A DNA stretch of 64,000 nt from Eutreptiella sp. 'Long Island Sound 2002' (GCA_964036045.1 OZ038378.1:42842001-42906000); one strand, 5' to 3'; shown: positions 9,820 through 31,380, counted from the first letter of the stretch. Notes: generated from the sequence alone by a model not told the origin. Made by a program: numbers and translations.

Positions 9820-10660
9820 TTACTGCCTAAAGCTGGTGGCGCCTATTGGCCTCTCACCACTTACCCTTGTCCTGCCATTGAACTCCTTTCCTCCGGAGGT
9901 GGCAGTGCCCATCAGCCTCTCACCAGCTAGTGCCCTTGCTTGCTTAAGTAAGGATGGGCCGACAATTGTGTAGGGAGGGTTTACCACCATGTACTCCCGT
10001 CCTTTCCCTTGGTAGGTTATGCCACCGACGCGCCCAGACTGTCGCTGTTTCACTGCTCTGTGTTGGGTCCACTCAGAGGAGGGCAACAGCCCTTGCCATT
10101 GGCTCCTGGGGTCGTGGGGGGTCATAGAGCCTCCAACAGTTCTGAAGGCTCATGTGGGCCGTGGAGGATTTGTGATGCACACACATGGGGGGGTGAACAG
10201 CTTCTCTGACACTGCTGCCAACAAAAACGGTGACAGACTATCCATTAATTACCGTCTGCTATTGTTCGACCGTTGGTGGCCCTCCAACCAGCCCCCTCCG
10301 AGTGCAGTTGGCTTCCATCCTAAAATCCACACACAAAAATTAAGGAAAAATGGCATGGCTCTCGAAAGAGGCGGGCCAGCCCACAGTCACTTGTGCAGTC
10401 ATCTGTTTGAGCTGTCAATGACCGAATAACCAAATTCCATCTGCACTGCACCATGCCAACACAATCCGAGTGTTCTTCGCCTGAGCAAAGCACCCACACT
10501 GCACTCATTGGATGGGGCCACACACACTTTGAGTAAATTTTTGTGCCGGAGGAACCCAGAATGAGGGAGAAATAGTACCAACACTGCTGAACACCTGTCC
10601 AATGTAATGGTCACAGGATGCTCTAGAGTTCAAGACCCCCTGACGTAGATGCTGGTAGAC
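9820..10660 (-). mobile_element. DIRS-like retroelement fragment (RNase H end plus adenine-methyltransferase-like domain)
   Basis: VVNPPYTIVGPSLLK with VNPPY at 9970-9984. It follows an RNase H-like tail (WLEGHQRSNNSRR*LMDSLS). RT-RH-MT is the established DIRS pol layout. Heavily degraded. Confidence 0.5.
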
Positions 10661-11410: not shown

Positions 11411-12511
11411 TCTCATTGCCCTAAGTCCTCACAACATGAAATGGTGAGCTGACATGTTTTCAGGGTTTCTTTGGAAGGAAAGGAGAGGGGAGGAGTGGTT
11501 AGGGCGTGAGATGGGGAGCTTTAGAAGGAGTTGTTGCACCGCGTGTGCACCATGCACATACTGTGGCAACCTTTAAGGGCCAAACACCAGCGAACCATCC
11601 CAAAAAGCCCATAGAACACCACCAAACCGCAGTTGCTAGCACAAAATCATTCTTGCGAGAGGCTTTTTGATGGTTGCCAGTAAAGCCTGGAGGCTTCTGG
11701 GCAGTTGTTGTTATTTCCAAGTGGGTTTTGGATGCTAGTTTCTTGGTTTCTTGGTTTCTTTGGCAGAGTGGGGTGTTCCAAGGGATGAAGGCAATGGGGT
11801 GTGGATGCGAAATTCCAACCGGTGAAATGCACAATCACGTGCAATTGTCCTACTATGCACCTCGCACTGGATGCTAAAAAAATTGCATCTCTGATGGGCC
11901 CACAACCACCACAAGGAGAAGTCTCTCCATTGTGCTTTCACCATGATCAGTGACATTGGTGCCAGGGACAACCAAAAACAAGGGCATGTTGTTTCAGAGC
12001 TGTGAAGAGAAAAATAGTATAGTATCTACACCACCTCATCCTGCCCCCGGCACCCGCGAGCAGGGCGGCGGGAGTTCACGTGTGCTACTGGCCCTCCCAC
12101 CCCTCCCTAGGGAGGATCATTGCGTGAGGGGCCATGCACTACGCCGCGTCCGACACTAGAGCCGTCGTCTGATCACACAGCTCAGGTGTGATAAGTCGCC
12201 ACAAGGAACGGATACTGCGGTCGATGTTCCTCACTACCCGTACAGTACATCCGCTTCAAAGAATCACGCAACTCCTAGGGCGGCGGGGAGGCATCTGTGC
12301 GCTCTCAAAGCCATCGGAGCCCCGCTGGGAGATGCCTACCAATAGTGGCAGGCCAGATGGCAGCCCGCTAGGAAGGGATGTCCCTCCGCATCACCCAAGC
12401 CAACAGGTCGTGCCACGGCTGCAGCTGGGCTGAGCCCCACTGGAGGGCAGCTCGCACATCCGAGACTACTACCATGCCGCGCGGGGCTGCGAACACGGCC
12501 ACGGGCATTTG

Positions 12512-12670: not shown

Positions 12671-12892
12671 TACAATTTTGACTTGAATTTGAACAAAAAA
12701 CACAAAGTTTATGGGGGGGGGGGGGGGTCAACGGTAGGTGGTATTTGTGTTTAAGGGCATGGTGCCCCCTGGTCGATTCTAGGACACTTGTGTAAGTGGC
12801 GCCCCACCCGGGCCAAACCGTGTATTGTAAGGTCAGCAAAAACAAAATGAGGCTCAAGAAAAGAAGGAGCTTTTATATCATAAATATCTACA

Positions 12893-12926
<34 letters not shown>

Positions 12927-14243
12927 CTACACCCCTCTCCCCAACTCTAGGTGGCTCCACCATACGGCTCTAAGGTGCGTGCGAAGGGAACAACTTGGTG
13001 CATACATGTGGGGGAAGGGGCTAAAATCGATCAAAAGGGGCTCAAAATGGGCTCAAAACACTTGTTCGTGCACCCCCAATGGTCGAGGATCACTTTTGGA
13101 AAAACGCGTTTTTGACTCATTTTTCACCCATTTTTGCTCCCAAAATGGCCCTTTTTCAAGGCATTTTGGGATTTTCCAGGGCCAAAACCTGTCCCAATGG
13201 GCTCAAAATGGGCTAAAAACACTTGTCGGAGCATCCGAAATGGTTCAAAATCACTTTTGGAAAAACGCGTTTTTGACCCATTTTTGACCCATTTTTGGTC
13301 CCAAAAAGGCCCATTTTCAAGGCATTTTGGGATTTTCCATGGGCCAAAACGCGTCACCACGGGCTCAAAATGGGCTAAAAACACTTGTTTGAGCATCCCA
13401 AATGGTCCACGATCACTTTTGGAAAAACACATTTTTGACCCATTTTCGACCCATTTTTGGTTCCAAACGGCCCATTTTCAAGGCATTTTGGGATTTTCCA
13501 TGGCCCAAAACGCGCCACCACGGGCTCAAAACGAGCTGAAAACGCCTGTTTGAGCATCCCAAGTGGTCTGGGAACAACTTTGGAAAAAATGAGTTTTTTC
13601 GCCCCGGGGACCCTGGTGGACCCACCGTTGGCCCCCGCCGTGCGCGGGCCTGGCTGCCCTCCGGCTGTACCAAGTGACCACTGGTACGGGTGTCTAGGCG
13701 TCCATTAGTGGGGGGTTGCGGGTGGACTAGGTGCCCTCGGAATCAGATTTTGAGCCACGTAGCCCAAGATACGGCGCGTGCTTGGTTTCAGGGTGTTAAC
13801 TGGTGCACATTGCGCAGATTTTGGGGCTTTTTGGCGCCTTTTTGGGCTGTTTCTCGGACATATTGTGGAGTTGAAGGGCACTAGAGGGCTCTCTAACACG
13901 GCGAAGTCAAGCCGCACATGTAGTGTAGGCACCGTTTCCCTTCGTTTGGGCGTTTCGCCCGGGTTTGGGGGCTATTTTGGACGAAAAATGGCTGTTGTTG
14001 GCCCAAAACTGCGCAGATTTGGGAGGGCACCCCCAGACTTGGCGCCACCGCCCCGGGCCACCACCGGTGAGTTTCTGGCTCAAAACTTGGATTTGGCACG
14101 GCCACCACCTAGGCTCCAAGATGGCTACATGGGCAGAAGATCCGAAGCGTTGGGACGGAGCAATGGCCAAAACGGCATGGAGACGTCCTTGTTGTTGCTT
14201 GTTGTTGTTGTTGTTAGCTAAATTTAAGGGGAGAGGGGTGTAG
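12927..14243 (+). mobile_element. Non-autonomous TIR element, copy 1 (~1317 bp, subfamily A)
   Basis: 15-bp TIR CTACACCCCTCTCCC...GGGAGAGGGGTGTAG, internal 161-bp subrepeats and no credible ORF. Preceded by (CT)n and followed by (TA)n. Confidence 0.85.
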
Positions 14244-14287
<44 letters not shown>

Positions 14288-14293
14288 TCCAAT

Positions 14294-14354
14294 CTACACC
14301 CCTCTCCCCTTAAATTTAGCTAACAACAACAACAACAAGGGGAGAGGGGTGTAG
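14294..14354. repeat. 61-bp mini-element: TIR + inverted right-end segment + TIR
   Basis: ctacacccctctccc-cttaaatttagctaacaacaacaacaacaag-gggagaggggtgtag, flanked by (TA)n. Confidence 0.85.
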
Positions 14355-14454
<100 letters not shown>

Positions 14455-14460
14455 TCCAAT

Positions 14461-15773
14461 CTACACCCCTCTCCCAACTCTAGGTGGCTCCACACGGCTC
14501 TAAGGTACGGGTGAAGGGCACAAAGTGGTGCATACATGTGGTGGAAGGGGCTAAAATCGATCAAAAGGGGCTCAAAATGGGCTCAAAACACTTGTTCGTG
14601 CACCCCCAATGGTCGAGGATCACTTTTGGAAAAACGCGTTTTTGACTCATTTTTCACCCATTTTTGCTCCCAAAATGGCCCTTTTTCAAGGCATTTTGGG
14701 ATTTTCCAGGGCCAAAACCTGTCCCAATGGGCTCAAAATGGGCTAAAAACACTTGTCGGAGCATCCGAAATGGTTCAAAATCACTTTTGGAAAAACGCGT
14801 TTTTGACCCATTTTTGACCCATTTTTGGTCCCAAAAAGGCCCATTTTCAAGGCATTTTGGGATTTTCCATGGGCCAAAACGCGTCACCACGGGCTCAAAA
14901 TGGGCTAAAAACACTTGTTTGAGCATCCCAAATGGTCCACGATCACTTTTGGAAAAACACATTTTTGACCCATTTTCGACCCATTTTTGGTTCCAAACGG
15001 CCCATTTTCAAGGCATTTTGGGATTTTCCATGGCCCAAAACGCGCCACCACGGGCTCAAAACGAGCTGAAAACGCCTGTTTGAGCATCCCAAGTGGTCTG
15101 GGAACAACTTTGGAAAAAATGAGTTTTTTCGCCCCGGGGACCCTGGTGGACCCACCGTTGGCCCCCGCCGTGCGCGGGCCTGGCTGCCCTCCGGCTGTAC
15201 CAAGTGACCACTGGTACGGGTGTCTAGGCGTCCGTTAGTGGGGGGTTGCGGATGGACCAGGTGCCCTCGGAATCAGATTTTGAGCCACGTAGCCCAAGAT
15301 ACGGCGCGTGCTTGGTTTCAGGGTGTTAACTGGTGCACATTGCGCAGATTTTGGGGCTTTTTGGCGCCTTTTTGGGCTGTTTCTCGGACATATTGTGGAG
15401 TTGAAGGGCACTAGAGGGCTCTCTAACACGGCGAAGTCAAGCCGCACGTGTAGTGTAGGCACCGTTTCCCTTCGTTTGGGCGTTTCGCCCGGGTTTGGGG
15501 GCTATTTTGGACGAAAAATGGCTGTTGTTGGCCCAAAACTGCGCAGATTTGGGAGGGCACCCCCCGACTTGGCGCCACCGCCCCGGGCCACCACCGGTGA
15601 GTTTCTGGCTCAAAACTTGGATTTGGCACGGCCACCACCTAGGCTCCAAGATGGCTACATGGGCAGAAGATCCGAAGCGTTGGGACGGAGCAATGGCCAA
15701 AACGGCGTGGAGACGTCCTTGTTGTTGCTTGTTGTTGTTGTCGTTAGCTAAATTTAAGGGGAGAGGGGTGTCG
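14461..15773 (+). mobile_element. Non-autonomous TIR element, copy 2 (1313 bp, subfamily A)
   Basis: Near-identical to copy 1, (TA)n on both sides, right TIR ends gtgtcg. Confidence 0.85.
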
Positions 15774-15843
<70 letters not shown>

Positions 15844-15849
15844 TCCAAT

Positions 15850-17162
15850 CTACACCCCTCTCCCAACTCTAGGTGGCTCCACACGGCTCTAAGGTACGGG
15901 TGAAGGGCACAAAGTGGTGCATACATGTGGTGGAAGGGGCTAAACTCGGTCAAAACGGGCTCAAAACGGGCTAAAAACACTTGTTTGAGCATCCCAAATG
16001 GTCCGGGATCACTTTTGGAAAAACGCGTTTTTGACTCATTTTTCACCCATTTTTGCTCCCAAAATGGCCCTTTTTCAAGGCATTTTGGGATTTTCCAGGG
16101 CCAAAACCTGTCCCAATGGGCTCAAAATGGGCTAAAAACACTTGTCGGAGCATCCGAAATGGTTCAAAATCACTTTTGGAAAAACGCGTTTTTGACCCAT
16201 TTTTGACCCATTTTTGGTCCCAAAACGGCCCATTTTCAAGGCATTTTGGGATTTTCCATGGGCCAAAACGCGTCACCACGGGCTCAAAATGGGCTAAAAA
16301 CACTTGTTTGAGCATCCCAAATGGTCCACGATCACTTTTGGAAAAACACATTTTTGACCCATTTTCGACCCATTTTTGGTTCCAAACGGCCCATTTTCAA
16401 GGCATTTTGGGATTTTCCATGGCCCAAAACGCGCCACCACGGGCTCAAAACGAGCTGAAAACGCCTGTTTGAGCATCCCAAGTGGTCTGGGAACAACTTT
16501 GGAAAAAATGAGTTTTTTCGCCCCGGGGACCCTGGTGGACCCACCGTTGGCCCCCGCCGTGCGCGGGCCTGGCTGCCCTCCGGCTGTACCAAGTGACCAC
16601 TGGTACGGGTGTCTAGGCGTCCGTTAGTGGGGGGTTGCGGGTGGACTAGGTGCCCTCGGAATCAGATTTTGAGCCACGTAGCCCAAGATACGGCGCGTGC
16701 TTGGTTTCAGGGTGTTAACTGGTGCACATTGCGCAGATTTTGGGGCTTTTTGGCGCCTTTTTGGGCTGTTTCTCGGACATATTGTGGAGTTGAAGGGCAC
16801 TAGAGGGCTCTCTAACACGGCGAAGTCAAGCCGCACGTGTAGTGTAGGCACCGTTTCCCTTCGTTTGGGCGTTTCGCCCGGGTTTGGGGGCTATTTTGGA
16901 CGAAAAATGGCTGTTGTTGGCCCAAAACTGCGCAGATTTGGGAGGGCACCCCCCGACTTGGCGCCACCGCCCCGGGCCACCACCGGTGAGTTTCTGGCTC
17001 AAAACTTGGATTTGGCACGGCCACCACCTAGGCTCCAAGATGGCTACATGGGCAGAAGATCCGAAGCGTTGGGACGGAGCAATGGCCAAAACGGCATGGA
17101 GACGTCCTTGTTGTTGCTTGTTGTTGTTGTTGTTAGCTAAATTTAAGGGGAGAGGGGTGTAG
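15850..17162 (+). mobile_element. Non-autonomous TIR element, copy 3 (1313 bp)
   Basis: Same TIRs. The 5' segment has the aactcggtcaaaacggg variant shared with copies 4-6, while the body is like copies 1-2. Confidence 0.85.
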
Positions 17163-17208
<46 letters not shown>

Positions 17209-17214
17209 TCCAAT

Positions 17215-17275
17215 CTACACCCCTCTCCCCTTAAATTTAGCTAACAACAACAACAACAAGGGGAGAGGGGTGTAG
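17215..17275. repeat. Second 61-bp mini-element
   Basis: Identical to 14294-14354 and flanked by (TA)n. Confidence 0.85.
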
Positions 17276-17277
17276 TA

Positions 17278-17327
<50 letters not shown>

Positions 17328-17333
17328 TCCAAT

Positions 17334-18646
17334 CTACACCCCTCTCCCAACTCTAGGTGGCTCCACACGGCTCTAAGGTACGGGTGAAGGGCACAAAGTG
17401 GTGCATACATGTCGTGGAAGGGGCTAAACTCGGTCAAAACGGGCTCAAAACGGGCTAAAAACACTTGTTTGAGGATCCCAAATGGTCCGGGATCACTTTT
17501 GGAAAAACGCGTTTTTGACTCATTTTTCACCCATTTTTGCTCCCAAAATGGCCCTTTTTCAAGGCATTTTGGGATTTTCCAGGGCCAAAACCTGTCCCAA
17601 TGGGCTCAAAATGGGCTAAAAACACTTGTCGGAGCATCCGAAATGGTTCAAAATCACTTTTGGAAAAACGCGTTTTTGACCCATTTTTGACCCATTTTTG
17701 GTCCCAAAACGGCCCATTTTCAAGGCATTTTGGGATTTTCCATGGGCCAAAACGCGTCACCACGGGCTCAAAATGGGCTAAAAACACTTGTTTGAGCATC
17801 CCAAATGGTCCACGATCACTTTTGGAAAAACACATTTTTGACCCATTTTCGACCCATTTTTGGTTCCAAACGGCCCATTTTCAAGGCATTTTGGGATTTT
17901 CCATGGCCCAAAACGCGCCACCACGGGCTCAAAACGAGCTGAAAACGCCTGTTTGAGCATCCCAAGTGGTCTGGGAACAACTTTGGAAAAAATGAGTTTT
18001 TTCGCCCCGGGGACCCTGGTGGACCCACCGTTGGCCCCCGCCGTGCGCGGGCCTGGCTGCCCTCCGGCTGTACCAAGTGACCACTGGTACGGGTGTCTAG
18101 GCGTCCGTTAGTGGGGGGTTGCGGGTGGACTAGGTGCCCTCGGAATCAGATTTTGAGCCACGTAGCCCAAGATACGGCGCGTGCTTGGTTTCAGGGTGTT
18201 AACTGGTGCACATTGCGCAGATTTTGGGGCTTTTTGGCGCCTTTTTGGGCTGTTTCTCGGACATATTGTGGAGTTGAAGGGCACTAGAGGGCTCTCTAAC
18301 ACGGCGAAGTCAAGCCGCACGTGTAGTGTAGGCACCGTTTCCCTTCGTTTGGGCGTTTCGCCCGGGTTTGGGGGCTATTTTGGACGAAAAATGGCTGTTG
18401 TTGGCCCAAAACTGCGCAGATTTGGGAGGGCACCCCCCGACTTGGCGCCACCGCCCCGGGCCACCACCGGTGAGTTTCTGGCTCAAAACTTGGATTTGGC
18501 ACGGCCACCACCTAGGCTCCAAGATGGCTACATGGGCAGAAGATCCGAAGCGTTGGGACGGAGCAATGGCCAAAACGGCATGGAGACGTCCTTGTTGTTG
18601 CTTGTTGTTGTTGTTGTTAGCTAAATTTAAGGGGAGAGGGGTGTAG
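17334..18646 (+). mobile_element. Non-autonomous TIR element, copy 4 (1313 bp)
   Basis: Near-identical to copy 3, with (TA)n flanks. Confidence 0.85.
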
Positions 18647-18763
<117 letters not shown>

Positions 18764-18772
18764 TCCTCCAAT

Positions 18773-19954
18773 CTACACCCCTCTCCCAACTCTAGATGGC
18801 TCCACCACACCACTCTAAGGTACGTGCGAAGGGCACAAAGTGGTGCATACATGTGGTGGAAGGGGCTAAACTCGGTCAAAACGGGCTCAAAACGGGCAAA
18901 AAACACTTGTTTGAGCACCCCAAATGGTCCGGGATCACTTTTGGAAAAACGCGTTTTTCACCCATTTTTGACCCATTTTTGGTCCCAAAATGGCCCATTT
19001 TCAAGGCATTTTGGGATTTTCCATGAGCCAAAACCCGTCGCCACGGGCTCAAAATGGGCTAGAACCACTTGTTTGAGCATCATAAATGGTTCGGGATCAT
19101 TTTTGGAAAAACCCGTTTTGGACCCATTTTGGACCCATTTTTGGTCTTGAAACGGCCCATTTTGAAGGCATTTTGGGATTTTCCATGGCCCAAAAGGCGC
19201 CACCACAGGCTCTAAACGGCCTAAAAACACTTGTTTGAGCATCCCAAGTGGTCTGGGAACAACTTTGGAAAAAAATGTTTTTTTCGCCCCGGGGACCCTC
19301 GTGGACCCACCGTTGGCCCACACTCTGCGTGGGCTGGCCGGCCCTCCGGCTGCACCAAGTGACCACTGGTACGGGGTTCTACGTGTCTCGTTGGGCGATT
19401 CTGAGGCTTGGAAACCATGAAAAGTGGGGGGGTTGCAGGTGGACTAGGTGCCCTCGGAATTGGGTTTTGAGCCACGTAGCCCAAGATACGGCCCATTCTT
19501 GGTTTCGGGGTGCTGGTGCACGTTGCGCAGTTTTTGGGGCTTTTTGGCGCCTTTTGGGGCCGTTTCTCGGACATATCGTGGAGTTAGAGGGCACCAAAGG
19601 TCCCTTGGTCGCGAGAAAGTCAAGCCGCACGTGGAGTGTAGCAGCCGTTTGCCTTCGTTTGGCTGCTTTGAACCCTTACCAGGGCTGTTTTGGGCGAAAA
19701 ATGGCTGTTTTTGGCCCGAAGCTGCGCAGTTTTGGGAGGGCACCTCCCGACTTGGCGCCACCGCCCCGGGCCGCCACCGGTGAGTTTTTGGCTCAAAACT
19801 TGGATTTGGCAAGGCCACCCACCACCTAGGCTCTAGGATGGCTAAAGTAGAGTCAGGCCCGAGGCGTTGGGAAGGTGCAATGGCCAAAACAGCACGGAGA
19901 CGTGTTGTTGTTGTTGCTTGCTTGTTAGCTAAATTTAAGGGGAGAGGGGTGTAG
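18773..19954 (+). mobile_element. Non-autonomous TIR element, copy 5 (1182 bp, subfamily B)
   Basis: Same TIRs, one fewer 161-bp subrepeat and a diverged 3' half (aaccatgaaaagtgggggg, gaacccttaccaggg). Confidence 0.8.
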
Positions 19955-20004
<50 letters not shown>

Positions 20005-20010
20005 TCCAAT

Positions 20011-21186
20011 CTACACCCCTCTCCCAACTCTAGGTGGCTCCACACGGCTCTAAGGTACGGGTGAAGGGCACAAAGTGGTGCATACATGTCGTGGAAGGGG
20101 CTAAACTCGGTCAAAACGGGCTCAAAACGGGCTAAAAACACTTGTTTGAGCATCCCAAATGGTCCGGGATCACTTTTGGAAAAACGCGTTTTGACCCATT
20201 TTTGACCCATTTTTGGTCCCAAAATGGCTCATTTTCAAGGCATTTTGGGAGTTTCCAGGAGCCAAAACCCGTCCCCATGGGCTCAAAATGGGCTAAAAAC
20301 ACTTGTTTGAGCATCCAAAATGGTCTAGGATCACTTTTGGAAAAACGCGTTTTTGACCCATTTTTGACGCATTTTTGGTCTTGAAACGGCCCATTTTCAA
20401 GGCATTTTGGGATTTTCCGTGGCCCAAAACGCACCACCACGGGCTCAAAACGGGCCAAAAACACGTGTTTGAGCATCCCAAGTGGTCCGGGAACAACTTG
20501 GGAAAAAAATGTTTTTTTCGCCCCGGGGACCCTGGTGGACCCACCGTTGGCCCCCACCGTGCGTGGGCTGGCCGGCCCTCCGGCTGCACCAAGTGACCAC
20601 TGGTACGGGGGTCTACGTGTCTCGTTGGGCGAGTCTGAGGCTTGGAAACCACAAAATGTGGGGGGTTGCGGGTGGACTAGGTGCCCTCGGAATTCGTTGT
20701 TGAGCCACGTAGCCCAAGATACGGCCCATTCTTGGTTTCGGGGTGCTGGTGCACATTGCGCAGTTTTTGGGGCTTTTTGGCGCCTTTTTGGGCCGTTTCT
20801 CGGACATATCGTGGAGTTAGAGGGCACCAAAAGTCCCTTGGTCGCGAGAAAGTCAAGCCGCACGTGCAGTGTAGCAACCGATTGCCTTCGTTTGGCTGTT
20901 TTGAACCCTTACTAGGGCTGTTTTGGGCGAAAAATGGCTGTTTTTGGCCCAAAACTGCGCAGTTTTGGGAGGGCACCTCCCGACTTGGCGCCCCCGCCCC
21001 GGGCCGCCACCGGTGAGTTTTTGGCTCAAAACTTGGATTTGGCAAGGGCACCACCTAGGCTCTAGGATGGCTAAAGTAGAGTTAGGCCCGAGGCGTTGGG
21101 AAGGTGCAATGGCTGAAACGGCACGGAGACGTGTTGCTTGTTGTTGTTGCTTGTTGTTAGCTAAATTTAAGGGGAGAGGGGTGTAG
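20011..21186 (+). mobile_element. Non-autonomous TIR element, copy 6 (1176 bp, subfamily B)
   Basis: Same TIRs, 3' half similar to copy 5, followed by short atatatacatatat. Confidence 0.8.
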
Positions 21187-21238
21187 TAATATATATACAT
21201 ATATGAGGTGCACACACGTGTGGTGCACACACATGTGC

Positions 21239-22250
21239 TTTATGTGAAGTCGCAAAACACACGCTTGTAGATGAGGTCTGCCTTCTTATCTTTGTAGGTG
21301 GGTTGTGCTCAGGGAGGATTGTGCTTGCACATGTTGCGAAGCACGTCCGTGGTCTTTGTATCCAACTCTTCAATCAATTTTTTGTCATACTACAATTTAC
21401 CACAGGCATCTTTGGGGTAATGCTCTGGAACAAAATTCCTTACCACGGATCACCACCTTTGGACGGACCTCATCTACAGAAGGCGGCTGGTCAAACAGAA
21501 GCCGGTCACCCAATGCGAATGCCAATACAATGCATGCTAGTGTGGCAGTAAATTGCACTCTCCAGTTGCGCAATGCCATGCATATCTCCAAGGGACACAA
21601 AACGGAAGCATGCAGGCACACTGATAAACTCCACATTCATGGCACATGATGTGGGCTGTGTCGTCACAAAAAAAGCACGACGAACGGCTGGGTGAACAAT
21701 AGGGCCTAGCATACATCCGTGCCAAGGCCCAATTGGGTGTGGTCTCAATAGGGGGGGCATGTGCAGAATCATGATAGTGCAAAGCTGCCTGTGCAATCTC
21801 ACGCAACAACCACAGTCTGTCTTGTGGAAGTTGGATGCTACCGTGGACAACACGCCTAGACAAAAGGCAATGTAGCATCAAAAGGCGGGATGGTAGCTCA
21901 CACCGTCTTCTTGATGTAGAAAGGTGGAGTAGAGGGGGGCTATAGCAAAAGCTACACTGCCAAACTCAGCCAAGAACCTGTCCCACCTCTTTTGTGGCCT
22001 TGGCTCAATGCCTTCTTGTTCGGCAATGAGGTTGACTATGGCCAATGTACCCTTTGCGAATTGCCGTTAAGGGAACTTTTGAATGAGAGAGCGAATATGG
22101 GTACCCAAAACAACTATTTTGTCCGAAAAAGGTCTTTTTCAATGGGTTGGAATGGAGGACATGGTTTCAAACATTCTAAAAAAATAAAATACAGGTCCCT
22201 GCGAGAACAAACCACCCCTTTTCCATACACTGCGTGGCCATGGTAGCCGT
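21239..22250 (-). pseudogene. Cassette gene D: Cys-rich Zn finger plus C-terminal SAP/HEH-like motif (disrupted)
   Basis: CFFCDDTAHIMCHECGVYQCAC at 21612-21677 and terminal LIEELDTKTTDVLRNMCKHNPP*AQPTYKDKKADLIYKRVF* at 21239-21385. Stops and frameshifts. The start is uncertain. Confidence 0.5.
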
Positions 22251-22306
22251 TTAATGCCCTATTCGTATTGTGCCGTTCGCCTGTGTCTGCTGCGACACTT
22301 GCGAAT

Positions 22307-22381
22307 GCGAATCTAGGACAAATTCGCGCGAACTTCGCGCGAACTTGGCGCGAAGTTCGCGCGAATTTGTCCCAGATTCGC
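22307..22381. promoter_or_regulatory. 75-bp near-perfect palindrome containing four TT(C/G)GCGCGAA 10-mers at 11-bp spacing
   Basis: 34-bp arms (22307-22340 and 22348-22381) with one mismatch and a 7-nt loop. The 10-mers start at 22323, 22334, 22345 and 22356. It lies upstream of gene D. The regulatory role is inferred. Confidence 0.6.
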
Positions 22382-22453
22382 GTACAGGTATGCACATCTT
22401 AATTCACAATAACACGCACGTCCACTTCGCCGGCCATGAACTGTCCAAACGTA

Positions 22454-24247
22454 CTATGCTCGTTGTTTGCGCTGTTTGCGGCGTCTGAAACGTTGCGTAA
22501 GGGTATGTACATAGTTGAGGTCACTAAGGGCCCTCTTGCAGGCCCGCCTAGCCAATTGTTGTACGGTCACTGGGCCTTGCCCACGCATGGACCTCTTTGT
22601 CACGTCCCACCCCTCCGCACGGAGGCTGTCGTCTATGGTGTGGTTGTCAACGACAACCTGCACACCTAGCCGCCAACGCAGAAGGCTTAGGCCCCCGCTG
22701 TTGCGCAACATGCGCTTGAGCCTACGGTGGCTGCCTTCCATGGCGAAGCATGAAAATTGGGAGAGATTTCTCCGATGGCTGGCAAAAAAAGACATGTGGT
22801 CAATCCACAAATGTGACCACAATAGCTTAGGCCATTCCAAGAGTTAGTGGGCTTTGCCCGTTGCTATGCTACAGTCACGTAACCTTCCTAGGTCTGCCCC
22901 GGACAGCCAAGATGTCCGCCATGCATATATACACATCTTGGCAAAATTGTCCCACCACTGCCTACAAACATCCCCCCATGGTTTCCCCCCCACCCGCTTG
23001 TTGTTCATTCCCCCCTCTTCAAGGCACACGGCAATGAGTGCCTCCCACCTCCGGGTGCGCATGAGTTGCACAGCCGCGGCACACTCTAGCCTAACGTTTC
23101 CCTTCGCGTTGGCGGTGTCGTTGCCCTTTGCCATCCTACCCTTTGTTACCGTCTTGGCTGCCATGCGGGCAACATCTAGGATCGGTTGGAAAAAATTGCG
23201 GACAACGACCGCCGCGGACTTGCCAGTGTCAGCCGACACCGCATCCCTCATGCCGGAAATACCACAAATAGTTACCCGCAGCATCCCGTGCAACCCGTAG
23301 TCAGGAATGCGACGTTTGGCTGGGATGTGTCTATATATGGCTCCCATGGGGAGCACAACCTCCCACCACCCATCAATGGTGGCTTCCAAGCCAAAATTGG
23401 CAAGGCAGTCTGGCCTATTGCGGCCGCAAACCCAACAAACCATGGCTCGCGGAGCCTCGGCTTTAAAATTTTTACAATTGGCCATTAAAATTTGTGCCTT
23501 GCCATCGGCACAGAGGAAGAAAAGTGTCTCCCGGTCGGCACCGGAAGTATCTTGGAAGACAACCTTACCAGCATTCCACAACTGTTGGTCGAAGTCAACC
23601 TCTTGAGCAGCCGCGTACAAGGTCGACCACTCCTCACTACCCCCCAATAGCCACCAACTTGCTAGTTGATCGGGGCTACGGGTACCCCCGAGGGTGCAAT
23701 GCACGAAGGACGCCTCGTGCCGCGACGTGCCGTCCACTGCTAGTGGCATCCAATGCAGCCTTGGATTGCCCGGTTGTTGGACGTGGGCGGGTTCAACCGG
23801 TCGGCAACGGTACAAGTGTTGCAACCGCGCCGGTAACGGGCAGAAGGCTCCGTATAGCTCCGTGTCATCCCCCGTCTTGGCTACAAACCCCTCCGATGCG
23901 GGCTGCGCAAGCTGCTGCATGGTGACCCACACGTCCTCCGATGGTACTCCCTCCACTAAATGGGGAGTGAGGTACTGCGCCTCCGTCCTGGACAGGTGCA
24001 GCAATCGGATGCGCCACACCGCTGCGACGGTCTTCTCCCACATGGATGGTGCAGTGGGTAGAGCACCACTCCCCCCCCCCCTGTCTACTGGCGTGAGGAC
24101 AAGCTGCCCTGTGTCCGGAAGGTGCCTCACCAGATATTCCTGCAATGTCCTCAAGCGGCGGGCCCGGTACTGCCTGGACTTGACATGGGCAAAGGCCTTC
24201 TTCCCCTTGTCGCCACTCCCACGTCCCATGACAAAAAACACTGACAA
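22454..24247 (-). pseudogene. Cassette gene C: RAG1/Transib-like DDE transposase (~597 codons, one in-frame TAA at 22844-22846)
   Basis: ORFs 22844-24247 and 22454-22840 are in the same frame. Motifs are LAVDGT (D ~23733), LCADGK (D ~23505), CWVC (23426-23437), DYGLHGMLR, H-x4-H (HLWIDH, 22796-22813) and E (22736-22738). The E lies exactly 20 residues after the second His, as for RAG1 H937/H942/E962. Confidence 0.75.
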
Positions 24248-24398
24248 TAGGCAAAAGGCAATGCATGTTGATTATGAAAGTCAAGAAAGTCAGACAAAGT
24301 CAGCCCCATTGGCATCCACCGCACAACAAAAAATTTGTACAACACATTCGTACACCCCATGTATTGGGAACCACTATTAAAGACAAATACTGTATAAA

Positions 24399-24512
24399 TT
24401 CGCACGAAGTTCGCGCGAAGTTCGCAAACAACCCCGGACGGTAGTCGGCTGGGTCGTTCGCGCATTTGCAAGGAATCGCGCGAAGTTCGCGCCAAGTGCG
24501 CGCGAAGTTCGC
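24399..24512. promoter_or_regulatory. Cluster of TTCGCGCGAA-like 10-mers upstream of gene C
   Basis: Copies or variants at 24399, 24410, 24421 and at 24475, 24486, 24497, 24508, with 11-bp spacing in each run. Confidence 0.6.
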
Positions 24513-24582
24513 AGCATGTTCAGGACAGTGGTTGGCCCCGGTGTAATTTACAATGGTTAAAAGGGCCGTTCGCAGGGTGACA

Positions 24583-26039
24583 CTACGGGCTTGCAGTGCC
24601 TATGGAGCTCCCAGAGCCATGGGCCTCGGGGGGTGTGGGGGGCTTGAAGGCAGGGTTAGTGGCGGCCTCCACCAGGGCGTCCCCCGGGTAACGCTTCTCA
24701 ACAGCGTCATGGCTGTCCAAGGCAGTTTTATACCCCGGCACCACTAACTCGAAGGACAGCCCCCCCTCCTTTTGGCCAAGCAGCAGGCGCGCGGTGGCGG
24801 CCACTGCTGAGAGCTCCCCCTTCACCTTCTCTGCCTGGGACTTCCCGGCCTGGCTCCCCGCCATAAGGTACTTCACACCGTCGCTCACCCCCCCCCCCGC
24901 CGCCGCTACCCCCCCCCCCTCTTCCGCTCCCCCCACCTCCTGCTGCTGCCCCGGCTTGGGCTTGGGTTTGCAGGCCTGCGCCCGCAGCAGGTCCCGCTCC
25001 CGCTCCGCTGCCGTTGCCCGCCGCTCCGCCTCCTACGCCCGCTGCTCTGCCTCCTGGAGCTTGCCCCGCAGGAGGAGAACCTCCCCCTCTGCCGCCACCG
25101 CCCGCTTTTGCCACTCGGGCATGGCCCCCGCCTGCGCCGCCACCCACGCGTCCACGTGCGCTGCCGGCGGGGGCTTTGCAGCCGAGGGCTGGCCCCCGAC
25201 TTGGCGGGCAGTTTGGGGGCCTTGCGGGGCCGGCCCACCTTGCCCCTGGACCCGCCGCTCCTGGAGCTTCGCATGGAGGAGGCATCGTCCCCCTCCCCCT
25301 CCCCCTCCTCCGCATCCACGTCCACCACTCCCCCCACCTCCCCCAAATGCCGGCGTTGCTCCTCCTTTGCTCGGGTGAGCATTTGGAGCCAGGCGTAGCT
25401 CATGTGCTCCTCCACCCGGTCCCCCCATCCCCTCACCCCCGTCACCGCCAACACTGCCAACCGCCTCAACTGTCCCTCTGGCACCCCCGCCTCACCCTGC
25501 ACGCAACAATCCATCCTCCAATGCCCTCCAGGAAGCCAGTATGCGTAGAGGGCAATAATCCTCTCCCCCTCCTTCCAACCTCCCCCGGGGTTGGGGTAGG
25601 TGATGGCGCAGGGGAAGGACATTTTGAGGGGCGGCTCCCGCGCCCCATCCTGCGTCTCCACCTCGATCTCCCACGTCGTCGCCACGAACTCCTCCCTTGC
25701 CCGCTTCCGTCCCGGGAGGTCCAGCTTCCATCCGAACGGGGGCTGGGACCGCACCATGGAGAGGGTGGTGATGGGGGGGAGGTCCGACGGGTAGGCCGTG
25801 GCACCGGTTCCTGCCACCGGGTTTGCGACGACCACGGGGTCGGGGCCCGGGGCTGGAGGGGGGGCCGCGGGAACGGCCGGTCGGATGTCTGCGGGCGGGC
25901 GCCGGCCGAACTCGAGGGCACGTCGAAGGACAAGTGGCCGCCCGTGCCCGGCTGTGCAGGAGCACTGGTGTGCCCGGCCGGGCGGAATCGCTTCTGGGCG
26001 GCCACGGCCGCTCGGGGGTCGGGCAGCCAGCAGTGCCAT
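24583..26039 (-). pseudogene. Cassette gene B: unknown protein with AT-hook-like motif, acidic tract and coiled coil (frameshift plus TAG)
   Basis: ORF 24906-26039 (...FPCAITYPNPGGGWKEGERIIALYAYW..., DAEEGEGEGDD, VGRPRK) shifts into ...EVLLLRGKLQEAEQRA*EAERRATAAERERDLLRAQ..., which continues as 24583-24936. Confidence 0.6.
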
Positions 26040-26088
26040 GGCTCCTGAGAATGAGATGAAATGGAAAAATGTAAATATTCATGTGAAA

Positions 26089-26164
26089 TTCGCGCGAACT
26101 TCGCGAGAAATTCGTGAATGAGCATATTCGAATGCGAAGCACACGGTTGCGAACTTCGCGCGAA
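26089..26164. promoter_or_regulatory. Cluster of TTCGCGCGAA-like 10-mers upstream of gene B
   Basis: Exact copies at 26089 and 26155, variant TTCGCGAGAA at 26100, in an AT-rich intergenic gap. Confidence 0.6.
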
Positions 26165-26189
26165 TACGGGGTAGAAAACAATGCATACC

Positions 26190-28099
26190 TCACATTCACA
26201 CGGGCAAGTCACAGTCCACGTCCCCCTCTTGGACTCCTTCGCCCGCTTCCACTCTGGCACAGCGTGGAGCAGCCGCCACGCGCGGGCCGGGCGCGTGGGG
26301 GGCAGCGTAGCCCCAAGTGCCCATGTCACCTCCGCGTCCCCGTCGGTCGAGTCCGCCTTCACCACCTCCATCTCATACGCCCCGTTCCACATAAGGATTT
26401 CCCCCTCGCGCACGGTGACGGGGGAGATGCCGTGCGCGGAGGGCGAGAGGAACAGGGGATGGTGTGTGCACACCGGGGGGCCTGGCTACACCTCGGGGGG
26501 GGCTGAAGACTTCGTCCACCACCTCCCGGCTGGCCAGCCCCACCCGAGCCTCCAATCCAACACCCAACAGCAACAGTTGCCCGAACGTGGGCACGTCCTC
26601 CCCCACCCCCCTTTCCAGCAGGCCGAGGCAGTCCTTGAGCTCCAGGGGGGTGGGGGGGTCCAGATGCGTCGTATTTGGCTTAACCCCCGAATGACGCCGA
26701 TCGGGGGTCCACTGCGTAAACAATGCCCCCTGCATCTTTTGCCCGGGGGGAGAGGGGAGCCCGTGGTGCCGGGCAGTGCTGACCATGACGAGGACCTCCC
26801 CCTGCTCGAGGAGGACCTTGTCCCACCTCTCCTCCGTGGCCTCCCCCGGCGCCTTTCCCGCCTGGATGTTGAGGCGGTACTGGGGGGAGAGGGCCACGAA
26901 GGTGGAGATGTGGCAGTTGGAGGGGTGGCGGTCAGGGGGGGGGAGCATGTCGGGGGCGGTGGAGACATCCGTGTGCGGGAGCTGGTCCCCCGACTCAGCA
27001 TCCGGCACGATGACCGAACACGGCATCTGAAACAAGTCCTCGAACGGATCGGGGACACGGTCCTGCAAGGAGTCAATAAACTTTTGAATAAGGGCACCAG
27101 CCAGCCCCCCGGTTTTGGAGGGCTTGGACTGGTACCGCTGGGGGAGGGTGGGGTCCTTCCTCTGCTCCTCCACCGGTTTCACATTGAACACCGGGTCAAA
27201 ATGTTGAGGAACTTGGTTCCCCCCCCCCCAATTTTTTTCCACCTTCCCCTAGGTGGTCTTGCAGTCCTCCGCGAGAAGAATATCGCGGTGGACTCTGTAG
27301 CCAAGGCCGTCCACGGAGTTGCGAGCCATCGGGGGGGCTGGGCGGTCAGCCTTCACGGAGGGGTTAGCGGTGGCATACGAGGGGGGGTCCTGCAGGGGTG
27401 CCGTGCGCAAGGGGGGCTCGGGCGTAATGAAGGGGGGGGGGTCCGCGATTCCCCGATACCAACCGAGCCCCTTCATCCTATGGAGAGTGGGCACAGTGAT
27501 ATCGGGGATGTGGTGGAGAGGGGGCACGGTCGGGTGGCTGGGCAAGATGCCCATATCGTCCCACCACTGGGCCTGCACTCCCTGCCATTGAAAAGGAAGG
27601 TTAGAATGGTTAGCCTGCGGCTCACCGGCAGGAAAATAGTTATTGATGGCAATCATGTCCATCCTCATGGGGCAGTGAACGAGGCCAGTGGTGGGGTAGA
27701 TGGCACAAGGCCAGGCTTGGGCTTGCCCACGGTGTGCGTGGCCATGATTCCCAAAAGGCTCTCCGCCGTGTCGCGGGTGGGAATGAGCCGGACGGCCCGC
27801 AACCCCGGGAGGGCCACCTGCAACTCCGGGAAAAGGCGAGTGGCCCAACCTTTTTTCCCAAACCATCCCGCCCTTTCGGGGGTGCGCATGTCCACATGGA
27901 TGAAGTGGGGGGGGGTGGCCAACCCTTTCGCCCAACCCACCACCTCCTCCACTGCCAGGGCCCCCGTGTACGTGGCCTCCTCCAACGTGCCGGCGCGAAG
28001 GGAAAGGCCCTGGTAGCGGCGGCCTAGGGTGCCGTCGGCCGGGTCGGGGAGGGAGAGGGACCCGATCTGGGACATGGGGATCGACTGCAGGGTGGACAT
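26190..28099 (-). pseudogene. Cassette gene A: multidomain protein with a 2OG-Fe(II) dioxygenase-like (DSBH) domain (two frameshifts, one TAG)
   Basis: Starts MSTLQSIP (28099). The core reads GYRVHRDILLAEDC...QRYQ...SVIVPDAESGDQLPHTD (H-x-D at 26967-26975)...ISTFVALS...GEVLVMVSTARHHG (His at 26763-26768)...QGALFTQW. In-frame TAG at 27249-27251. Confidence 0.65.
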
Positions 28100-28162
28100 G
28101 GTCACAGAAAAAGCGAAAGTGAGGTCTGAACAAAAAACATACGACAAGAACAACATGCTGAC

Positions 28163-28270
28163 GCGAAAAGCAAAGGATATTCGCGCGAATGTGAAGGCAC
28201 ATATGAATGCGAATTTAGTGGCAAATTTGGGTTGGGAATGCGAACGCGAATTCGAATTTTATTTGCGAAT
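28163..28270. promoter_or_regulatory. TTCGCGCGAA plus multiple GCGAA(T) half-sites upstream of gene A
   Basis: Exact copy at 28180-28189 and about six gcgaa half-sites within ~100 bp. Confidence 0.5.
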
Positions 28271-28412
28271 TTAAGCTACATTATGACCTATTCAAGCTAC
28301 AAATTGTGCGGTACGAATTTTTATGAATTTTAAGTGAAGTAAGCACCGCAAACAGGCACAAAGACAGGGCACAACAGGCAAAACGGGCTGAAAATCAGCA
28401 AAGTGAGCGTAC

Positions 28413-29466
28413 TCATTCAAAAGTTCCGTTCACAGTGGGTACAAACTCCTCGGTGTTTGCACCCACTATGTACGGCTTGTTACACAGCGGATCGAACACG
28501 AGGCACAAGAAAGTGCGCGTTGGGGAAACCAAACAACAAGCGCAGCACCCAATGTTCATTGCGCACATTATATATTTGCGCCGCAAGCAAGGGAGGCACA
28601 TAGACCATATCAATGGACGCTGCTTCCAAGGTACGCAGAACCCATGACTCAGACAACACCTTCTTACGACCCCACGGCGCAGATGACGCATTCCACAACG
28701 AGTCACGCACGACCCACGCCACACCCATAACAACCCAGTCCACACTCAAAGCTGTCCGAGTGAGCCACCAGTAATACACAACAATCTCCGCACTATCTGT
28801 GACGTAAGATTCTGAGTAAACATCCCTCAAATGGCATGCCTCCAACCTATATTGTTGAGACCCCGACATTGGAGCGATCACGTCAAGTGGTCGTTCCCAT
28901 TCGTCATGGAGAGATGACTCAACATGTTGCAATTGGGCCGTAGGGCTGCCTGGGCCATTAGTTAGCGCATGGCACACTGCGGCCAAGACGTCATCTCCAC
29001 AAACAGGCCTCGTATTAACCATTCCAGTCTGTGACGGCTGGGTGGTATTAGAGCACGGGGGTGGGGGGACAGTCTCCGTCGGAGCATTGGGATGGTCGTC
29101 CAATTTCTCCATGGCTAGAGGCGGGCTAGTAGGAGAGGCATTTGCGGACGTAATCGCGGGGAGGCTGCCATCGCCACCCGGGTGTGGGGAGGGTTGGGGA
29201 CAGGGCACACGGGGAGGAGGGGGTATTTTCAGCATGGGATTGCGTGGGATGCAAGATCTTCCCAACCTCAACCTCCTCCTCCCACTTTTGCAAGACCCAT
29301 CACGACTCATCTCTGCCTTTAAACTTGCGAGCAACGCACTCCTCACCTTCCAAACACCACATGCACCCCTCGCAATAGACACACCAAAAGAAAACTTTCT
29401 GATGGCACTGCCCACAAGTGAAGGGGGGGCGGTACAGGTGCACGGAATGCCACCGCTTGCTTCCAC
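28413..29466 (-). pseudogene. Ulp1/SENP (C48) protease-like segment, frameshifted and probably truncated
   Basis: IYNVRNEHWVLRLL (HW at 28549-28554), then CLVFDPL in the +1 frame. The catalytic Q..C motif was not seen. It lies directly downstream of the MULE transposase. Confidence 0.5.
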
Positions 29467-31380
29467 AGTCCAATTCCCGCTTCACAAGGGGTGCAACGGC
29501 AAGGGTCTCACCGTCACAGCTACCATCCGATGAGGAATCAGAAACAGAATCACAATCAGAATTGGAGTCTGATAATTCTTGGCTCCTCTTGGCTGCTTTC
29601 TTTTTTTTGGGGCCTCCTTGTGACTTCACAGCACGCAAATGAGGCGCTTCAACGCGGGTTACAACGGTGCGTCTCACACGACCAAACTTAAAGGGACGGG
29701 AACCAACAAACTTCCAGGAGTAGCGCAAAAGCACCTTGAAGCCGGGTTCCACAAGAAGCCACAACAAACACCTTCCCAAACACCTAATGTGCAACATGTG
29801 GCACATGTGCAAGCCTCGGCTGTGACACGGTGAACCCTCAAGAAGTCCACAAACTGGGGCCATGTGACAGCCTCCGTTAGATATGGTGGCCAAGGTTTTC
29901 TTCTACTGGGGCACTTGCATGCCATCAATGGGGGGGTACTCCCGGACAGGCTTGCCGCTGGCAGCCCGCTTTCGTGATGCAACACCTTGATGGAAGAAGA
30001 TTGCATCTCCATCATCGAACAAGATTGCATCATGAAGTATGCATTGGGCCTCTTGCCACATCCAAGGAGCAGGCTGCATAGCTTTACCCCCTAGTTGTTC
30101 GCGGCCTTTTGTCCATTGTTCACCCATTCGAGGCATAGCGTCTTGCAGAAACTCACGCAGCCCGTGCAACTTGTGCCCACTAAGAAGTTTCATACAAAAA
30201 GCTCTTGACTCTGCAGGTGTGCTACACTGGACACCGGGGTCGGAGTGGCCCACATGCCACCCTTGGCGTTTGTCGATATATTCTTTTTGGGCATGCTCCA
30301 AATAATGGGGAGTTGCCGCATAATGGTCACTTAACGCGACCCAACCACCTTTGAAAACGGATGTGCTCCAACTGAGATGCACGTCCCCGATGGCTGCGTG
30401 GACTTCTACCCGGGTGGAGCGGTCCGAGATAACCTTCTTCAAAGCCTTCAGCATTGCTCTTTGTGCGTGCCAGTAGCACACAAGCCACACAATTGCAACC
30501 CACACTCGCTTTGCTGCATTATACATGGTGGGGTCACCATTGCTCATGAACTTTCCCACGCTCCAAATGAAGCGTGGATAGCGGGTGGATATGGCACGGC
30601 TCGTGCACTCCAGAATGAAGTGCAAAGCATAAGTGTTCTCCTTTTCTGCAAGACTAAAGGAAAAAAGTGCGGTGGTGTCGTTCATGGTGAGGCCCCCCAA
30701 AAGCAGAATGCGGAGGCGTTGCCATATCACCTTGCCAGTACCGTCCAACCAACACCATGGCACCTGGCCTGATCGCTGGCATTCTTCAAAGATTAGTCTA
30801 GCAGTTTCCAAGAAACGGTTCGTACCAAAAACAATGGCCACGAAAGGGTCAAGCTTGTAATAAAAAAAATGACCTCATCTGGCAGTTGACTGCCCATGGG
30901 CCATGCGTCCAATATGGCGCAGAACTCCTGATATGTCATGTTCATGCCATGACCGTACCTTTTGCGACGCCATCCCTGCAGGAATGTGCGTATCTTCTCC
31001 TGTAGGCGGGTGTTGCTCATTTGGTGGCATACTTTTTTTTCATTTTGCAACTTATATGCAATCTCATTGGGAGACTGCCGATATTCAAAATATTGCTGCT
31101 CGATAAGATTGCGGCCAGCCTCTTGTGACCAGACGCCTCGCCTTATGCCCATTGTGCGATGGGCGCAGTCATCGCAGTCAGGTGTAGTAACTTCAACGAA
31201 CCACATCCCAGCTGAGGCAGCATCTCTCCGCACTTTCGCAACAGCAGCACAACCCTGCCAAGATCCCTTACCGGTAGGACGGGTGAGACAACACAACGCA
31301 TCACAATCGTTGCTCTGTGTGTACCTGTACTTGAACCCATTCACACGAAATGCATGCAACACATCCTTTTTTTTTTTCAT
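29300..31380 (-). mobile_element. Mutator-like (MULE) transposase, frameshifted, with degenerate SWIM and Cys-rich tail
   Basis: N-terminal WRKY/FLYWCH-like KYRYTQ...C..C...H (30793-31380). Core LDGTGK...FMSNGDPTMYNAAKRVW...CYWH (30467-30478)...STPAES (29903-30841). SWIM-like ACTCATCC (~29800) and CGQCHQKVFFWCVYCEGC. Confidence 0.85.

Follow-up and report, generated by a model that had tools for sequence, protein, structure and literature searches.

A 64-kb stretch of DNA from Eutreptiella sp. 'Long Island Sound 2002' (GCA_964036045.1, OZ038378.1:42842001-42906000; the window below, taken at its full length) contains, at positions 22046-28443 of the minus strand, one decayed copy of a multicopy cut-and-paste DNA transposon with three co-oriented genes, which we call A, B and C. 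This copy is no longer able to make any of its three proteins. It is probably a dead representative of an unnamed lineage in the clade formed by EnSpm/CACTA, Mirage, Chapaev, Transib/RAG1 and Plavaka. A preliminary description of the window had proposed the decayed copy of a multi-gene DNA transposon, a proposal borne out by the inverted repeats, the 2-bp target duplications and the linkage of the genes in other copies.

Fifteen loci (L001-L015) were fetched for comparison, with L002 and L015 belonging to the window's subfamily and L001 and L011-L014 to a sister subfamily; L003, L004 and L006-L010 are short metagenome contigs of distant C relatives, too short to display neighbouring genes or ends. 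The limits of the 6398-bp window copy are the homology limits common to L002 and L015, and its tips at 28443 and 22046 are homologous to the tips of the sister subfamily (L011 9606-16635, L001, L012 and L014). The preliminary description had set the 5′ limit of the unit at 28300; the element actually starts at 28443. Its terminal inverted repeats are imperfect (TGTACCC...GGGTACA). On the minus strand, the 5′ repeat, TGTACCCACTGTGAACGGAACTTTTGAATGAG (28412-28443), matches the reverse complement of the 3′ end through TGTACCC and then, past an indel, through GGAACTTTTGAATGAG, and the 3′ repeat (22046-22085) ends in TTCGCAAAGGGTACA; an identical 40 nt terminate L015, the same stretch with one mismatch terminates L002, and the flanks beyond are unrelated. 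Sister-subfamily copies have the inverted repeats TGTACCCTTCGTGAAC...GTTCACGAAGGGTACA, where TGTACCCTTCGTGAAC begins both ends at the alignment limits of L011. A TT target-site duplication lies on either side of the window element (left copy 28444-28445, right copy 22044-22045). All four copies with both tips intact have a duplicated 2-bp flank (TT in the window, AA in L011, TG in L001 and TA in L012), for which the chance probability is ~1.5e-5.

The sister copy at L011 9606-16635 is 97-98% identical to L001, L012, L013 and L014 in most segments (93% in one), similarity ends at the same two points, and the intact length in this subfamily is 7.0 kb. Intact L011 encodes A (677 amino acids, aa), B (505 aa) and C (587 aa) head to tail. 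The A-B-C order is intact in L011 and L014 and is kept in the window copy as well as in L001 and L013, these last two each with a nested insertion, while L002 and L015 hold all three genes with part of the A/B region inverted. The inverted stretches (L002 5672-7245/7246-8607 and L015 4298-5295; one junction is palindromic with a 159-bp duplication) could be real rearrangements or assembly artefacts. Between the subfamilies, the A proteins are ~47% identical, the B proteins 28-33% and the C proteins 58%. In L005, which comes from a different assembly and has a C that is 42% identical, a B homologue lies directly upstream of C. An internal-deletion derivative of the sister subfamily, L012 3506-8227, has lost ~2.3 kb and has A fused to downstream sequence, and it retains both ends and the TA duplication.

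A word search for relatives of C returned 80, nearly all in one ENA assembly of megabase contigs. An exhaustive HMMER search for C yielded 663 representative clusters; those full-length distant members whose records were looked up come from short contigs of aquatic metagenomes. Sequence-variant clusters have 203 members for C and 193 for A, which show a high copy number, and the element is shown to exist in hundreds of variant sequences within a single eukaryotic genome, among them intact copies as well as a derivative with an internal deletion. Because ends are shared between copies, flanks are duplicated, a deletion derivative exists and variants are many, we conclude that this is a 6.4-7.0-kb cut-and-paste transposon that makes 2-bp target duplications. 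The preliminary description had proposed a single multi-gene unit, a claim that would fall if the genes were unlinked elsewhere; the order of A, B and C is kept in other copies, as is B-C in L005. Intact versions, for which it had suggested a search, were found in the sister-subfamily copies L011 and L014.

All three minus-strand genes of the window copy are interrupted. Gene A (26075-28099), a putative 2-oxoglutarate (2OG)-Fe(II) oxygenase gene aligned to an intact 677-aa relative, P0081, lies in three frame segments with frame changes near 27701-27704 and 26470-26502, as located by mapping intact relatives onto the window, and has an in-frame stop at 27249-27251. Gene B (24583-26039) was aligned with the intact B of L011 (505 aa) and the B of L005 (535 aa); its frame changes at least once, and a stop lies in frame at 25033-25035. 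Gene C (22454-24229) is 58% identical, in a single frame, to the intact 587-aa relative P0006; its sole in-frame stop is at 22844-22846, and its catalytic and zinc motifs are intact.

The identity of C as a transposase comes from structure. An AlphaFold (AF2) model of P0006, made with a 19-row alignment, reached a predicted local distance difference test score (pLDDT) of 84 and a predicted template modelling score (pTM) of 0.77. When this model was compared with the PDB by Foldseek, the top 49 matches were all RAG1, BbRAGL of amphioxus or HzTransib of Helicoverpa, with E values from 6e-11 to 1e-5, alignments of ~520-610 columns for most matches, template modelling (TM) scores mostly of ~0.45-0.55 and identities of 11-14%; the next match after the RAG1/Transib chains was P-element transposase at 2e-3. 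In the model, D167 lies on the first RNase H strand, D243 follows strand 4, and E497 is on a helix that comes after an all-helical insertion. C266-x2-C269 and H472-x4-H477, two further motifs that 16-19 relatives conserve, are situated between D243 and E497, and D167, D243, C266, C269, H472, H477 and E497 are kept in relatives down to 27% identity and are all present in the window copy. Set beside mouse RAG1 (D708, C727, C730, H937, H942 and E962; PMC4914335), the gene C family has 23 residues from the second D to the first C against 19, and shares the spacings from C to C (3), from H to H (5; H937-H942 in RAG1) and from the second H to E (20; H942-E962). Gene C is thereby shown to encode a DDE transposase with the RAG1 domain layout: an RNase H core, D/D/E residues and a CxxC...Hx4H zinc site. 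Structure prediction and Foldseek, a check suggested earlier for the repaired proteins and here run on the intact relative of C, thus returned the RAG1/Transib fold. The accompanying claim that the motifs of C match the RAG1/Transib core holds for the fold and the active-site layout; calling it 'established' overstated the matter, as there is no sequence-profile link.

The EnSpm/Mirage/Chapaev/Transib (CMCT) clade makes 2-5-bp target duplications, and the C(2)C and H(3-4)H motifs occur throughout it (Kojima 2025, PMC12730594). The PlavakaA lineage has 2-bp duplications and 5′-TGT..ACA-3′ termini, fungal transposons of several superfamilies carry TET/JBP dioxygenases, and the published Plavaka families that carry TET are PlavakaB, from fungi (PMC12730594). 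Plavaka-like elements have been reported across Archaeplastida (PMC13519894), and a preprint on Bostrychia describes giant red-algal Plavaka transposons with three accessory genes, PAG1-3 (bioRxiv 10.1101/2025.02.11.637652). Of these, PAG3 has a ParB-like domain and a putative 2OG oxygenase, for which PHYHD1 is the best remote match; it adjoins tandem inverted-repeat arrays and was proposed to bind and modify its own transposon (bioRxiv 10.1101/2025.02.11.637652).

We filed the element described here in the wider clade, nearest PlavakaA by its ends, because a 5-bp duplication, heptamer-like termini and sequence similarity to Transib were all lacking. It resembles the Plavaka-type transposons with accessory genes of algae and fungi, and its ends fit a PlavakaA-like element and not Transib proper. 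It is like PlavakaA in its 2-bp duplications and TGT..ACA termini, and like related Plavaka lineages, which carry dioxygenase accessory genes, it has a candidate oxygenase in A. The likeness to PlavakaA lies in the ends; no Pfam family matched C or 18 diverse relatives, and for the accessory genes A and B, no relatives were detectable outside one genome assembly. The red-algal Plavaka elements are likewise multi-gene DNA transposons with a putative 2OG oxygenase (the remote phytanoyl-CoA-dioxygenase-type match in PAG3). Their inverted-repeat arrays lie beside the oxygenase gene, whereas arrays of 10-bp palindromes here flank A, also B and C, and lie near both ends. They are 17-19 kb long with three accessory genes, compared with 6.4-7.0 kb and two accessory genes, and they have a methylase/SET protein among the PAGs, whereas Pfam found no methylase or SET domain in A or B. 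The architecture had been called unrecognised in the preliminary description, and these published systems are close analogues of it (PMC12730594; bioRxiv 10.1101/2025.02.11.637652).

Gene A owes its putative function to a short set of conserved residues. H375-x-D377...H444, preceded by RGDMLLMV and with an HxD...H spacing of 69 aa, is kept between the subfamilies, and in the window the HxD codons start at 26975 and the distal His codon is at 26768. This HxD...H pattern is typical of 2OG oxygenases and makes A a candidate member of that group. Identity between window gene A and the intact P0081 is 45-47% over most of the length and 33% in the C-terminal part. Searches with a 495-aa relative from L001 and with the P0081 core (residues 290-480) found no relatives of A outside one assembly.

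A second oxygenase-like protein is encoded by a 4.4-kb element (L001 3605-7971) that is nested in gene B of a sister copy and bounded by perfect 33-bp inverted repeats (GGGATGCAGCGTTCTAGGGCGTGGTGCGGAACCCC). This nested element uses the palindromes ATCGCGCGAT and TAACTAGTTA and encodes, besides the 680-aa oxygenase-like protein, a 339-aa distant and shorter relative of C. The 680-aa protein has H353-R-D355...H421 with a spacing of 68, and sub-threshold matches to PhyH (E 0.034) and 2OG-FeII_Oxy_3 (E 0.07) cover exactly this HxD...H stretch; a PDB sequence search with it returned nothing relevant, and neither BLASTP nor hhalign found similarity between it and gene A.

The B proteins have conserved N- and C-domains, between which lie, in order, an acidic linker, a basic GRP(R)K patch and a coiled coil of ~60 aa. 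The patch reads VGRPRKAP in the window, RKGRPEG in L011 and, with the proline absent, RKRGRK in L005, set beside an AT-hook criterion of a GRP core flanked by basic residues. Pfam gave weak coiled-coil matches for B, none above threshold, and no AT-hook.

The non-coding parts of the element contain clustered palindromes. TTCGCGCGAA occurs 7 times in the 64-kb window against 0.02 expected, and its occurrences are confined to clusters at 28180, 26089-26164, 24410 and 22323-22365; with one mismatch allowed there are 13 sites, all within the same four clusters. The preliminary description's statement that the exact 10-mer is confined to clusters within the unit was thus correct. Cluster 1 (28180-28270) is 5′ subterminal, lies upstream of A and comprises one TTCGCGCGAA and ATTCGC half-sites; cluster 2 (26089-26164) lies between A and B, cluster 3 (24399-24506) between B and C, and cluster 4 (22323-22365) is 3′ subterminal, after C. 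Of the window's 21 ATTCGC half-sites, 15 fall in the element, none of them in coding sequence. The sister motif TTCGTACGAA makes up four clusters in intact L011, with an exact 11-bp spacing and at positions homologous to the TTCGCGCGAA clusters: 5 units at 9879-9932 (70-120 bp upstream of A and ~270-330 bp from the left end), 9 units between A and B (11982-12121), 12 units between B and C (14117-14289), and 3 units after C (16317-16348, ~290-320 bp from the right end), with no gene following this last cluster inside the element. The outer two clusters lie ~250-330 bp from each element end. In L005, both B and C are preceded by TTCGTACGAA arrays, and in L004 (a JGI metagenome contig) a dense run of GGCGCGCGCC-type palindromes at 50-330, followed by a long (CA)n tract, lies upstream of a distant C relative. 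Subfamilies with different array cores coexist in one assembly.

Other palindromes were seen in and around these loci. Each element also has 6-8 sites of a second palindrome, TTCACGTGAA, next to the main arrays and close to the termini (L011 9801, 12026, 16286-16360 and 16575, and the same places in L001 and L012-L014). We take it to be the central 10 bp of the bacterial parS site, which is bound by ParB, and we regard this likeness as a lead because a ParB-like domain has been reported for red-algal PAG3. A 6.5-kb insertion between C and the 3′ end in L002 (11767-18306), with inverted repeats starting ACTTAGGCGTCACAAG and a likely 3-bp duplication, has four open reading frames (ORFs) without a Pfam match and clusters of its own palindrome, CGAAATTTCG, which recurs in L015. 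The repeated 10-bp palindromes CGCGTACGCG, TGAGCGCTCA and GCACTAGTGC lie outside the element (L011 678-855 and 5343-5409; L015 1221-1349 and 3552-3606; L013 9433-12703). Mobile elements of this genome may thus carry palindrome arrays quite generally.

En/Spm (CACTA) is a multi-protein element whose short subterminal repeats are bound by the element-encoded TNPA for regulation and transposition. It belongs to the same clade and resembles the element described here in repeating short motifs near both termini; the motifs of the latter are perfect 10-bp palindromes, tandemly arrayed every 11 bp and present between the genes too, and their binding is a prediction. Because cluster 4 is followed by no gene, the outer clusters are at similar distances from the ends and the cores differ between subfamilies of one genome, we favour dual-role sites for an element-encoded dimeric binder. 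In the mechanism that we propose, C would cut at the TGTACCC tips and reinsert the element, and A, as a phytanoyl-CoA-dioxygenase-type 2OG-Fe(II) oxygenase, would act on the DNA or chromatin of the element itself. The dimeric protein, for which A, B or the N-terminus of C are candidates, would bind the arrays of CpG-containing 10-bp palindromes at 11-bp spacing (TTCGCGCGAA and its sister TTCGTACGAA), and those near both ends would be subterminal marks of the element as 'self', while those upstream of each gene would be regulatory. A more specific version of this proposal, which we put forward tentatively and with rather more doubt than confidence, is that each subfamily has a private palindromic 'operator' (TTCGCGCGAA or TTCGTACGAA, and ATCGCGCGAT in the related element) that co-evolves with an element-encoded binder tethered to or cooperating with the 2OG oxygenase. 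The element could then find its own ends and promoters and strip silencing marks from its CpG-rich arrays, with no interference between it and the sister subfamilies that share the genome.

Several results weigh against the transposon lineage and mechanism proposed here. Neither the pieces of A, its intact relatives nor an A profile found a match in Pfam or among PDB sequences, the predicted structure of A was unusable (pLDDT 34 from a 16-row alignment) and left the oxygenase fold unconfirmed, and no profile or pairwise comparison backs the oxygenase identity. The preliminary description had called an HxD...H 2OG-Fe(II) triad in A 'established'; the motif is present and conserved, and that word is too strong for the fold. 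For C, no profile tied the protein to RAG1, Transib or Plavaka, and PDB sequence searches with C alone and with a C family profile returned no RAG1 or Transib and nothing else relevant; the Foldseek match cannot place C inside the clade, because RAG1 and Transib are the only members with solved structures. As for the arrays, none were seen upstream of P0160-lineage genes, which lie on short contigs, no DNA-binding domain was identified in A, B or C, which leaves the array binder a guess, and other transposons of the same genome bear palindrome arrays of their own, which could reflect a host-wide feature.

The closest rival for the element as a whole is the view, put forward in the preliminary description, that it is strictly a Transib-superfamily or RAG-like element to which cargo genes have been added. 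The best structural matches are indeed RAG1, BbRAGL and HzTransib (4WWX, 6PQN and others), with the same overall fold, DDE placement and zinc site, and the Hx4H and H-to-E spacings are identical to those of RAG1, with the CxxC about as far behind the second D. However, the whole clade has the C(2)C and H(3-4)H motifs (PMC12730594), C shows no similarity in sequence to either the RAG1 core or Transib, target duplications measure 2 bp and not 5 in all four complete copies, the termini are TGTACCC...GGGTACA and not a CACAGTG-like heptamer, and no RAG2-like partner was detected, so that we consider a strict Transib or RAG identity improbable. That the unit is instead a set of independent nested insertions, or a host gene cluster that merely adjoins a transposase, is suggested by the frequency with which other elements have inserted in these loci (L001 3605-7971 and L002 11767-18306), yet a single inverted-repeat pair and a single 2-bp duplication enclose all three genes in every complete copy, and gene order is kept between subfamilies that are 47-58% identical in protein, which makes this reading very improbable. 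We give even less credence to a fragment of an integrated virus or virus-like element, the alternative raised in the preliminary description. The shared motif upstream of each gene does recall the promoters of large DNA viruses, but the unit's ends and duplications are those of a transposon, it contains no gene for a capsid, a polymerase or packaging, Pfam finds nothing, and a viral structure library gave no meaningful match, the sole one with E≤0.001 being a hAT-type transposase of a pandoravirus at a TM score of 0.26.

For the arrays, the rival explanation is that they do no more than act as promoters or enhancers, through which a host transcription factor switches the genes on together. Three of the four clusters are found 70-290 bp ahead of a start codon, as this would predict, but the fourth comes after the last gene, the outer clusters keep a similar distance from either end, and subfamilies of the same genome have different cores, which fits a private element-encoded binder better than one host factor. 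We regard a purely promoter function as rather unlikely. The preliminary description had treated the clusters as a shared promoter motif upstream of each gene, including a fourth gene, D; with the fourth cluster 3′ subterminal and the outer two near the ends, they are not simply promoters.

Gene D itself was rejected as a transposon gene, as the element ends at 22046, inside D, and 21239-22045 matches none of the 15 fetched loci. This segment is flanking DNA past the terminus, Pfam matches none of its ORFs, and in six other copies the flanks past the 3′ end are likewise unrelated. Of the four head-to-tail minus-strand genes described earlier, A, B and C are where they had been placed, and D lies partly beyond the terminus; stops and frameshifts had been attributed to all four, and both occur in A and B and a stop in C, with D excluded from the element. 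A Cys- and His-rich ORF of 114 aa (CFFCDDTAHIMCHECGVYQCAC) at 21537-21881 (minus strand) has no Pfam match and is unlinked to the element. The 64-kb window is repeat-rich eukaryotic DNA. A tandem satellite of at least 6 units of ~1.2-1.5 kb, each with 161-162-bp sub-repeats and simple-sequence tracts, occupies 12857-21230 and ends ~800 bp from the transposon's 3′ end, and on the other side a 312-aa ORF (29903-30841, minus strand) with a sub-threshold MULE transposase domain match (E 0.0013) is probably another decayed DNA transposon adjoining the element. Pfam scans of the A, B, C and D pieces, intact relatives and neighbouring ORFs gave nothing above threshold, and no tRNA or Rfam matches and no dinoflagellate spliced-leader relic were found in the window.

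The C family, with at least 663 clusters in public metagenomes and undetected by current profile libraries, may represent a new branch of RAG1-fold transposases and adds to the diversity known around the V(D)J recombinase ancestor. With intact copies at hand, the 7-kb, three-gene element offers a compact model for the idea, put forward for the giant red-algal Plavaka elements, of an oxygenase that is targeted to a transposon's own inverted-repeat arrays, and the change of array core between subfamilies of the same genome yields a direct prediction of binding specificity. If each subfamily does have its private operator, the arrays and their binder would amount to a self-addressed anti-silencing system inside a RAG1-fold transposon.

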